NCBI GenBank assembly: GCA_002269645.1
Contig: NIVC01000040.1
Location: 496,001-560,000, forward strand
DNA from: Macrostomum lignano
Taxonomy: Eukaryota
DNA length: 64,000 nt
Direction: 5' to 3'
Part shown: positions 21,801 through 27,799 of the stretch, piece after piece
Layout: each line of letters begins with the position of its first letter
How positions within the stretch are numbered: the stretch's first letter is position 1
Translations under genes and position numbers: made by a program
Notes under the pieces: model-generated
What the model saw: only the letters and a program-made list of their open reading frames with translations
Database searches by the model: none
Told to the model about the DNA's origin: nothing

Positions 21801-24800
21801 TAATTGGCTTTTGAGAAAGACCCACCTTCGATAAAGTTTAACTTGACTTGGCTTGAGTAAAGCTTCGCGTACTATGCGATTAGTGCTTAAGTGCGTCTTA
21901 CGACTGATACCGAGCAGTCGTAGGGTTAAGATCAACCTTACGAAAGACCATAGACATACGAACGTTTCGAGAAACAGTCTTTTGCGCAAAGTTACGAACT
22001 CGTAAAGTTGCGATCAATCTTACGCATAGCTAACTTGCGAGCCCTTCGAGCAACCCGTAAGTGTAGCTTACCCAACTTACGTCTATGGTCGATCGTAAGT
22101 TGCTTTCGAGAAAGACCCCCCCCCCCAGAAAGGCTGCACTATTAAAAACTCTAAATAACACGTGCTTCTTCAAATAGTACTTTAACAGAATTTTTTCTAG
22201 CGATTTATTAAAGTACCCATAGACGACAAAAAGAACATTGTTCGAGACAATGGTTTTCAGCAATATTTTTTGTTTAAAAAAAGCAAAGGCAACAGCTTTG
22301 GGTGATAAAACTGGGTCTCTAAATTTTAAAAAGTTTCTGGCTTTGTACATAGACTTAAACATGTGCATCTATATGCGTAACAGTTTGCGTAATCTCAAAT
22401 ATTGTGTAACATCGTATATAACGTTTAAACTCTACATTTTAACATCTCATCTCGCTGCAAATTAGACCACTGAAATACCGAAGGGTATGAGGACACACCA
22501 TCAAAACACCGAAGGGAATGAGGACACACCGTCGAAACACCGAAGGGAATGAGGACACACCGTCGAAACACCGAAGGGAATGAGGACACACCGTCGAAAC
22601 ACCGAAGGGAATGAGGACACACCGTCAAAACACCGAAGGGAATGAGGACACACCGTCGAAACACTGAAGGGAATGAGGACACACCGTCAAAACACCGAAG
22701 GGAATGAGGACACACCGTCAAAACACCGAAGGGAATGAGGACACACCGTCAAAACACCGAAGGGAATGAGGACACACCGTCAAAACACCGAAGGGAATGA
22801 GGACACACCGTCAAAACACCGAAGGGAATGAGGACACACCGTCAAAACACCGAAGGGAATGAGGACACACCGTCGAAACACTGAAGGGAATGAGGACACA
22901 CCGTCAAAACACCGAAGGGAATGAGGACACACCGTCAAAACACCGAAGGGAATGAGGACACACCGTCGAAACACTGAAGGGAATGAGGACACACCGTCAA
23001 AACACCGAAGGGAATGAGGACACACCGTCAAAACACTAAGGGAATGAGGACACACCGTCGAAACACCGAAGGGAATGAGGACACACCATTGAAATGGCAA
23101 TACTACATTAGCCCGCAGGAAATTAGCCCGCGGGAAGTTTGCCAGCGGACGTTTCCCGCAGACGTTTGCCCGCGGGCAAGCTTCCCGCGGGCTAATTTCC
23201 TGCAGACTAATGTCGTACTGCCGTTTCGGGTCTATGACATTAGCCATCGAAACACTGAAGGGTACAAGTGTATGAGGACACACCATAATCGGGTTGAGAT
23301 TATGACACCATTGAATTCAGGTAACATTTAAACAATTGTTACTAACACCAACCCCGTGACTCGCAATCCCAGGCAACCACAAACGAGTTTGGTATCCTCG
23401 TTAATTCAGCCGGTGTCCCAATTTTGTCGTCGCCAAATAGCGACGGAAAATTCTTAGACGCCAACGGTAAAGCATTGGCTTGTCGACGAGCGGTGGCATC
23501 GGTTGATCCCGGAACTGGCGAGCAGCGCCTTATTGACAAACTAGACGGCTTGCCCATTCGCGGTCTTCGACTTGGACCAAACGGAGTCCTACTAGACGAG
23601 TCCGGTTTGCCAGTTCGCGGTGAGAACGGCGAATTCTTCGGCGCTAATCATCGGCCGGTCTACGGTCGTCGAGGCGCTGACGGTGAACTGTTGGACGAAG
23701 AGGGACAGGCTCTGCAGCAGCTGGGCTTGAACAGCTTTGGCGTGTTGGCCGATTCGACCACCGGACTGCCGATTACCCGCCAGTCGGATGGTGCTCTACT
23801 CGACGCTCACGGCCAGCCAATCGATTGTCGACGTTGCGAGCTCAGCGCCGACGATTTGCTAGTCGATCCAGTCGACGGCTCGCCAATCGGCGTCACCAGT
23901 GTCAACGTTTTCGGCGTGCTGGTAGACTCGCAGGGCCGTCCGTTGCGCGGACCTCAGGGCGAGTTCTACGGAGCGAATCGGGCGCCGGTGTACGGCGGAC
24001 TGCGCGGCCCTGACGGTCAGCTGATCGACCCGGCGAACGGCGGTCAGAGACGGACTCGAGTTAACGAGTTCGGTGCTTTAGTGGACGCATCCACTGGCGA
24101 GTTGCTGCTGGGTCCAGACGGTCAGCTGTTGAATTCTCGGGCACAGCCAATGCCAAGCCGGCGGGTTCGGCTGGTCGAAGCGACGGAAGAGGGCGGCCAA
24201 CAGCAGCTGGTGGACGCAGAAACTGGGGAGCCGCTGAGTCCGGAAACGGACTGGCGTGTCAACGAGCACGGTGTCCTTGTGGATGCAGAGTCCGGCTTGG
24301 CTCTGCGTGGTCCTTCAGGCGAGTTTTTCGGTCCACCGGACGGTCTACCACTGGCCGGAGGTCCCACACGAGACGCCCAGGGTCGTCTGGTACGCGACGG
24401 CGTAGAAGATGGATCAGAGTTAAGTGGCAAGCCGTTGAAAACAAAGGTCAACGACTGGGGCGTTCTAGTAGAGGTTGTCGGCGAAGGTGAAAACGCTGAG
24501 GAGCGACCAATATTGTCGTCGGACGGTAAGCTTTTGGACGCGTCCGGCCGGGTCATCGACTGCCGAATCGTGCCAACAACAGCCGCAGCTCGGTCTCGTT
24601 TCGTCGACGACGTCGCTAAGAACAATGGACTGGAGCTGAGTGAGCACGGAGTGGTCATCGACACGGCCAGCGGTCTACCGGTTCGAAGCCAGGCCGCTGG
24701 CGAGTTTCTCGGCACCGATGGTCGACCCGTCTACGGACCAAGAGACGCCGATGGCAAGCTTAAGATTGAAACAAAGCTGAATGACTACGGAGTTTTGGTC

Positions 24801-27799: not shown

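Follow-up and report, generated by a model that had tools for sequence, protein, structure and literature searches.

The RIM-BP gene of the flatworm Macrostomum lignano, a species with spliced-leader (SL) trans-splicing, harbors within one of its introns an orphan coding exon (23373-25757, plus strand) which, judged by its sequence, is real and has a 5' end that depends on splicing. The exon lies in a stretch of 64,000 nucleotides (nt) from contig NIVC01000040.1 (assembly GCA_002269645.1, positions 496,001 to 560,000), which is called the window here and in which all positions are counted from the first letter. Its sequence fits two routes of expression about equally, namely cis-splicing from the preceding RIM-BP exon and trans-splicing of an SL whose AUG would act as initiator. 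With some reservation we put the first route in front: that the exon serves mainly as a cis-spliced alternative last exon of RIM-BP is given a little less than an even chance.

The open reading frame (ORF) is uninterrupted over 23346-25757 of the plus strand and is closed on its upstream side by a TAA at 23343, an in-frame stop 30 nt upstream of the exon start at 23373. The open part holds a single AG, at 23371-72 (caatcccag/GCA ACC ACA AAC GAG TTT GGT, where the slash marks the splice boundary), so that the exon would start at 23373 and comprise 2385 nt, that is 794 codons and a TGA (25755-57). A perfect TACTAAC branch-point motif at 23340-46 is positioned 27 nt upstream of this AG, and the acceptor is similar to the host cis acceptors (...aacccag/G) at 21031 and 27430. 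The first in-frame ATG is codon 260 (24150), and methionine accounts for only 3 of the 794 residues. As the ORF has no start codon of its own, its 5' end must be obtained through splicing at 23373, behind the AG at 23371-72. There is no in-frame GTRAG donor within the ORF, and thus the exon, if used, would be terminal.

On the host side, the FN3-III exon (21031-21366) is made of 112 whole codons and ends in GAC/gtgagt, a phase-0 donor at 21366/21367. The 23373 acceptor is also phase 0, and the predicted junction VPLPHD/ATTNEFG is in frame, as the phase of an alternative last exon demands. Directly after the ORF stop the GC content falls to intron level, and the only canonical poly(A) signal before the RIM-BP exon at 26184 is AATAAA at 26145-26150, 388 nt past the TGA, while a non-canonical GATAAA is found at 25982. 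Before exon 26184 is reached the ORF thus has both a stop codon and a poly(A) signal to itself, which is likewise expected of an alternative last exon; the density of AATAAA here is 0.4-0.8 per kb, and one in 430 nt would occur by chance in ~17-30% of cases. The sequence-only reading of this DNA had described a 2385-nt open frame between the FN3-III exon and 26184, with no ATG near its start, a cag acceptor in the phase of the FN3-III donor, its own stop and an AATAAA about 390 nt later, and every coordinate of that description was borne out.

Statistics of the frame and comparison of its internal repeats indicate that the ORF is a genuine protein-coding exon under selection. At the local base composition the probability of a stop is 0.036 per codon, and that of 803 open codons is ~2e-13. 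First-order Markov simulation, repeated 2000 times, produced no open run beyond 352 codons, with a mean of 156. Between the repeat copies, the proportion of synonymous differences (pS) is 0.72-0.77, which is saturated, and that of nonsynonymous differences (pN) is 0.38-0.46. Because pS is saturated while pN is lower, the repeats are old, with the amino-acid pattern rather than the DNA preserved. Conserved residues of the repeats carry scrambled synonymous codons, glycine being encoded by GGT, GGC and GGA and leucine by CTC, TTG, CTG, TTA, CTT and CTA. The position-specific GC of the ORF is similar to that of the adjoining RIM-BP exons. Horizontal transfer, considered for the bacterial repeat matches described below and for the GC content of 60%, was rejected, since the adjoining RIM-BP exons have 55-69% GC with similar position-specific values.

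The encoded protein is acidic (82 kDa, pI 4.5) and has no signal peptide under either route. Each super-repeat falls into two halves, A (NxFGVLVD..TG..I...DGxLLDAxGQPIxC) and B (NxHGVLVD..SGLPVRGxxGEFFGxNRRPVYG), and the array is followed by two half-repeats, an acidic linker and a long helix. AlphaFold2 (AF2) modelling of the repeat unit with the repeat-unit alignment gave an all-beta hairpin of moderate confidence (pLDDT 76, pTM 0.65), whereas the full-length protein modelled without alignment reached pLDDT 45 and is usable for the C-terminal helix only. The helix (residues 698-771) has a hydrophobic moment of 0.40 at 98-100 degrees, compared with a maximum of 0.31 among 1000 shuffles, and TRF detects a 33-nt period in the stretch encoding it. 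From the model and these properties, the C-terminal helix is probably membrane- or lipid-binding. It was not accepted as a member of the Apolipoprotein A1/A4/E family (PF01442): the score is 15.7 bits against a Pfam cut-off of 90, and only the 11-mer amphipathic periodicity is shared.

Searches for relatives place the ORF product, by sequence and model comparison, as an orphan repeat/helix module without known family or fold, in keeping with the ~790 amino acids (aa) of unrelated repeats that the sequence-only reading had announced. A Pfam scan of the ORF gave nothing above threshold and a PDB sequence search gave 0 matches. Foldseek with the repeat-unit model found no significant PDB neighbour (best E 0.18, TM-scores < 0.25), the top non-significant matches being beta-hairpin solenoids, with glucan-binding, CROP and choline-binding repeats among them. 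An exhaustive phmmer search against 1.84 billion representative proteins produced a single strong match, UniRef100_A0A1I8HA44 (P0002) of M. lignano, which comes from the same locus; beyond it there was only repeat-style noise and no homologue outside the locus. The weak phmmer matches, to bacterial proteins of the VirB10/TrbI type and to others, have repeats in the style of DGxLxDxxGxP or KAFKEFGxDT in common with the ORF. A word-indexed protein search with the ORF or the repeat alignment gave 0 matches, in an index that missed A0A1I8HA44 even with a 100%-identical query and is weak for M. lignano. The best non-bacterial repeat-style match (E = 3.8e-08) is a protein from outside the window (P0005), a hypothetical protein of 242 aa present in several metagenome and Logan assemblies, with DGKxLxxxDGxxxDxxGxP repeats, a Cys-rich tail and no Pfam domain; its homology to the ORF is doubtful.

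The host gene is, by its domain content and order, RIM-BP, as had been proposed. SH3-I, three FN3 domains (Ig_RIMBP2), SH3-II and SH3-III follow each other in the family order on one strand; Pfam detects Ig_RIMBP2 at 19076-19681 and 21031-21399 and SH3 (SH3_2) at 26561-27157, and SH3-I, FN3-II and SH3-III are confirmed by tblastn/BLASTP against a termite RIM-BP and A0A1I8HA44. In RIM-BP, SH3-II and SH3-III bind proline-rich motifs of Ca2+ channels and RIM and thereby link the channels to release sites. The stop of the gene, TAA at 27797-99, sits within an AATAAA (27795-27800), which suggests either a very short 3' untranslated region (UTR) or a true C-terminus in a further, unrecognised exon. 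Just past the FN3-III donor, by 21 nt, there is another AATAAA at 21387, and if the intron were retained, translation would reach an in-frame TGA at 21397-99. Polyadenylation within the intron near 21387 could conceivably yield a short RIM-BP, and in an AT-rich intron the signal may equally be there by chance. The rest of the intron upstream of the ORF is mostly repetitive, with a MITE-like element (miniature inverted-repeat transposable element) at 21595-22120, whose terminal inverted repeats measure 30 nt, and a tandem array of the form 31 bp x 20 at 22473-23087 (96% matches). The array is followed directly by a hairpin at 23091-23227, with 58-nt arms that are 88% complementary, 145 nt before the 23373 acceptor.

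The public gene model A0A1I8HA44 maps at ~100% identity onto the RIM-BP exons of the window and contains a piece of the ORF. In it FN3-III is followed by 25260-25748, where the ORF has its final 163 codons, and next by exon 26184; the splice sites used in the ORF are weak (acceptor gccgag/ACT, donor GC/GTCAAC). It also reads 26182-26223, the first 14 codons of exon 26184, in the other frame and switches back at ~26224 (26226-26348), whereas in the window this exon offers a clean phase-0 join from 21366. The switch implies a 1-nt difference between the source assembly of the model and the window within the RIM-BP exon 26182-26348. Because the length of the borrowed piece offsets this 1-nt frame difference inside exon 26184, the piece is, on sequence comparison, an annotation artefact, the frame repair of a predictor and not a transcript. 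The first 'exon' of the same model (17245-17337) is doubtful as well; it stands at a satellite edge, between two repeat blocks of the intron upstream of SH3-I (15487-18240), which carries ~1.7 kb of (GATA/TCTA)n microsatellite and then ~0.9 kb of a satellite with a 24-nt period.

If the exon is fed in cis, the 21366 donor would be its nearest upstream partner in the RIM-BP pre-mRNA and would reach the 23373 acceptor 2.8 kb before the canonical 26184, on an acceptor that would be transcribed earlier than its competitor. The 21366^23373 product, the isoform that the sequence-only reading had put forward, would consist of the coiled-coil N-terminus, SH3-I, the three FN3 domains and the repeat/helix module, with the linker, SH3-II and SH3-III dropped. 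As 33 nt separate the AATAAA at 26145 from the AG of the 26184 acceptor, the U-rich element downstream of the signal would be the polypyrimidine tract of that acceptor; cleavage and splicing would compete for one tract and be mutually exclusive. Judging from the spacing, this overlap is a possible switch between the ORF transcript and canonical RIM-BP. We infer that the junction is in use and that the chimera would be the functional product. Several features point this way. The phase match is required for an alternative last exon and is only a 1-in-3 coincidence for a nested gene, an exon fed in cis needs no ATG, and TACTAAC with a CAG acceptor is like the host's own sites. An acceptor with an upstream cis donor is expected to be cis- and not trans-spliced (Conrad 1993, as quoted in PMC8629364), and the 23373 site reads TCCCAG, without the [T/C]TNCAG motif that is enriched at trans-splice sites of M. 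lignano, although this argument is weak with the motif at only 9551 of 21754 such sites (44%) (PMC8629364).

A number of observations weigh against this route. The module is not attached to the RIM-BP of any other animal in the exhaustive search and the RIM-BP alignments, and the repeat region is absent from every M. lignano model in the public proteome according to the exhaustive search. Exact-protein look-ups with four ORF start variants (L-start, TTG/M-start, M260 and SL-M) and with A0A1I8HA44 found none on record, the supplements of three M. lignano genome/transcriptome papers have no RIMBP entry, and a literature search found no paper naming both Macrostomum and RIMBP. The module seems self-contained, its first repeat beginning 3 residues after the junction; a Met-Ala start from SL-AUG/GCA would place G at +4, a favourable context for initiation; and 30-39% of M. 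lignano genes are trans-spliced (PMC5730564, PMC8629364). In neurons canonical RIM-BP must skip 23373, so that the acceptor may be weak or silenced there. How probable a coding alternative last exon of 794 codons is beforehand is moreover a guess, and the weights given to the routes in general are rough, since base rates had to be assumed for genes nested on the same strand, for dependence on the SL AUG and for coding last exons of giant size; these weights are inference, not measurement.

The closest competitor, which we also hold for quite possible though short of an even chance and somewhat behind cis-splicing, is a nested gene. A transcript from within the intron, or processed host pre-mRNA, would be trans-spliced with the SL at 23373, the SL AUG would be the initiator, and the product would be a stand-alone cytosolic repeat/amphipathic-helix protein of 795 aa (M-ATTNEFG...), polyadenylated past the 26145 signal; the phase fit with RIM-BP would then be coincidental, or tolerated for occasional chimeras. 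The sequence-only reading had named this alternative, and both of its premises proved correct. The M. lignano SL, 35 nt long, ends in ATG, CGGTCTCTTACTGCGAAGACTCAATTTATTGCATG (PMC8629364), with ...TTATTGCATG as the 5'-end tag of SL-carrying reads, and the ORF is in phase 0 directly past the AG (cag/GCA), so that SL-AUG followed by GCA ACC ACA is in frame with no usable genomic initiator. The ORF begins exactly at a CAG acceptor and lacks an ATG for 259 codons, the first repeat stands at residue 4 of a module with its own stop and signal, AUG/G supplies the Kozak G at +4, and no RIM-BP of another species is related to the ORF. Predictors that need a genomic ATG would overlook such an ORF, in line with its absence from UniProt. 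That flatworms can initiate at the SL AUG is documented (Cheng 2006, via PMC9851317), and the same is assumed for Macrostomum (PMC10468722); in M. lignano trans-splicing is common. SL-read, poly(A) and RAMPAGE tracks and RNA-seq (SRP082513 and SRR2682326) for M. lignano are described in PMC5730564. Against the nested gene stand the phase match with the host donor and the pull of an upstream cis donor, both mentioned above. The SL AUG is in frame in 28% of trans-spliced flatworm mRNAs and was needed by just over 40 cDNAs of Schistosoma mansoni, in the figures of Cheng 2006 as relayed by PMC9851317, and hence only a minority of trans-spliced mRNAs need it. Furthermore, only ~20% of non-conserved M. 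lignano genes are trans-spliced (calculated from published fractions), and no promoter was identified, the 2 kb upstream being mostly repeats. That cis- and trans-splicing both occur at 23373 seems to us unlikely, though the chance of it is a real one. One exon would then make two proteins, a similarly doubtful arrangement, in which the neuronal 21366 donor would yield the RIM-BP chimera, the SL would yield the free module elsewhere or from an intronic start, and the 26145/26184 overlap would be the switch. With the same low probability, the chimera of that arrangement would keep the ELKS/BRP-binding N-terminus, SH3-I and the FN3 domains, and SH3-II/III would be exchanged for a beta-hairpin array with a membrane-binding helix of the synuclein/apolipoprotein type.

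Other explanations carry far less weight. A separate cis-spliced gene, with one or more unrecognised ATG exons in 21367-23372 or further upstream that join 23373 in phase 0, is very improbable. It has one attractive candidate, ATG/GTAAGT at 21626-21634, which when spliced to 23373 gives exactly M/ATTNEFG; this ATG, however, stands at the inner edge of a terminal inverted repeat in the MITE-like element, an element rich in CGTAAG motifs, and is probably there by chance. Among the other candidates the best donor score is 2/6, and a signal peptide or plausible N-terminus is encoded by none of them. Even a shade less probable is a split locus or operon, in which an N-terminal half of RIM-BP would end at the 21387 AATAAA or in the giant exon, followed by the ORF and by an mRNA for the linker and SH3-II/III that is SL-spliced at 26184. 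There, SL-AUG/TCG would be in frame, exon 26184 being phase 0, and one AATAAA follows the FN3-III donor by 21 nt and another precedes the 26184 acceptor by 33 nt; in M. lignano the intergenic spacing of operons peaks near 100 bp, and a repeat-corrected spacing < 1 kb is counted as operonic (PMC8629364). The idea is post hoc, though, and at the local AATAAA density single signals are unremarkable; the 26184 acceptor is TAG and not CAG, and the RIM-BP architecture is conserved across animals with a canonical in-frame 21366^26184 join available. Just as remote is a non-functional exon, be it an open frame due to chance, the decaying remnant of a gene once captured, or an internal cassette like that of A0A1I8HA44. 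No homologue was found in the protein searches and the public model uses 25260-25748 only, as would fit such an exon. Chance is excluded by the open-codon probability and the simulations given above, and a relic is hard to reconcile with a frame that has stayed open for 2.4 kb in spite of synonymously saturated repeats, whose pN is about half of pS. A cassette exon was rejected because each of the three GTRAG donors within the ORF is in phase 1 and the best in-frame GT, CAA/GTGGGT, scores 4/6, and because the version in A0A1I8HA44 needs weak sites together with a frame change inside exon 26184.

If the exon indeed makes a RIM-BP chimera, the scaffold half of the protein would be kept and the channel-binding half would be replaced by a membrane-binding tail, giving a ready-made dominant-negative or vesicle-tethering variant and a clear case of domain swapping through terminal-exon choice. 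A nested gene started by the SL AUG would show instead how flatworm genomes hide proteins from ATG-dependent gene finders, the public proteome having no entry for this orphan of 82 kDa. The question is also raised how the host gene tolerates a functional, phase-matched acceptor within its intron. Under either route the current public RIM-BP model of M. lignano is wrong at this locus. The coordinates of the exon and of the surrounding gene are collected in the table.

Table. Features of the ORF and of the RIM-BP gene around it, in positions of the window
Feature	Position	Strand	Basis or remarks
RIM-BP SH3-I, two exon pieces (~18242-18373, ~18581-18656)	18242-18658	+	tblastn of RIM-BP proteins; A0A1I8HA44 mapping
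RIM-BP FN3-I (~19098-19600) and FN3-II (~20031-20339) exons	19098-20339	+	Pfam Ig_RIMBP2/fn3; A0A1I8HA44 mapping; splice-site flanks
RIM-BP FN3-III exon	21031-21366	+	Pfam Ig_RIMBP2, E=2.5e-14
Intron or outron upstream of the ORF	21367-23372	+	mostly repeats; AATAAA at 21387
3' splice-site region	23340-23372	+	sequence; TACTAAC 23340-46, C-rich tract, CAG 23370-72
Coding part of the exon	23373-25757	+	794 codons and TGA; no in-frame ATG before codon 260
Five tandem super-repeats, ~100-130 aa each (aa 4-571)	23382-25085	+	39-48% identity to the first copy
Two additional DGxLVDAxGxP half-repeats (aa 572-600)	25086-25172	+	sequence repeats
Ala/Thr/Glu-rich acidic linker (aa 601-697), 21 D+E and 0 K+R, predicted disordered	25173-25463	+	
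Predicted amphipathic helix, ~74 residues, six 11-mers (xxK[MF]xxFxExT)	25464-25685	+	AF2 helix 698-771, pLDDT 75-83
Putative 3' UTR	25758-26175	+	GC down to ~0.4; AATAAA at 26145-26150, 33 nt ahead of the 26184 acceptor AG
Next RIM-BP exon (linker), phase 0, tctag/TCG	26184-26348	+	sequence, mapping; canonical partner of the 21366 donor
RIM-BP SH3-II exon (~26528-27154) and SH3-III exon (~27430-27796), stop TAA 27797-99	26519-27799	+	Pfam SH3_2; BLASTP to termite RIM-BP

Elsewhere in the window, WSC domains (PF01822, E 1e-17 to 3e-07) are encoded by five plus-strand exons arranged in tandem, at 41995-42339, 46345-46746, 48136-48531, 49695-50036 and 54300-54593. A sixth WSC exon is found on the minus strand just downstream of RIM-BP (29104-29460), and together the six look, from their sequence, like a local WSC-domain gene cluster. 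Fragments of non-LTR (long terminal repeat) retrotransposons occupy the minus strand at 750-4800 and 31400-34950, with frames split into several ORFs and Pfam matches to RNase_H (31441-31920) and RVT_1 (32870-33385). An Rfam scan of the window gave no match, and hence no SL RNA gene in it.

Both candidate mechanisms are of kinds already known, so the locus does not represent a novel type of system. In architecture the host gene matches the RIM-binding proteins RIMBP1/2/3, Drosophila Rbp and C. elegans RIMB-1, while the ORF, which sits in the intron after FN3-III, resembles no RIM-BP. In the literature consulted, RIM-BP isoforms differ in N-terminal or internal exons, as isoforms A and B of Ciona do (PMC7565545), and not by replacement of SH3-II/III. 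With the arrays of DGxLxDxxGxP beta-hairpins, such as bacterial VirB10/TrbI-type linkers and DUF3659 and, on the structural side, cell-wall-binding, CROP and glucan-binding repeats, the ORF shares the style of the motif and weak matches (E 1e-11 to 1e-4), but each match is made up of several stretches and none spans a whole super-repeat, and the ORF has no DUF3659 match; the likeness is probably a similarity of repeat composition. The C-terminal helix is like the 11-mer (11/3) amphipathic-helix proteins, which include the exchangeable apolipoproteins, alpha-synuclein, perilipins and group-3 LEA proteins, in its six 11-residue repeats, its strong moment and its long predicted helix. The weak Pfam matches of the ORF to Apolipoprotein and ApoC-I are far below thresholds, so this is a likeness of helix type and not demonstrated homology.

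As to the origin of the 5' end, the spliced-leader ORFs (slORFs) of flatworms (Cheng et al. 2006, J Biol Chem 281:733; PMC9851317) are alike in an SL ending in AUG, an ORF in phase 0 at the AG and the lack of a usable genomic ATG. They differ in that the acceptor here is in the intron of another gene, downstream of a free phase-matched donor, and is without [T/C]TNCAG.

In the cholinergic locus, VAChT/unc-17 lies within the first intron of ChAT/cha-1 and shares an upstream exon with it. As there, and as in alternative last exons in general, the M. lignano ORF, complete as a coding unit down to its stop and poly(A) signal, is housed by an intron of a neuronal gene on the same strand; it would likewise be reachable from an upstream host donor, and use of its poly(A) signal would exclude downstream splicing. 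The difference from the cholinergic locus is that in the present case the shared upstream part would itself be coding (SH3-I and three FN3 domains), so that a chimeric protein would be made.

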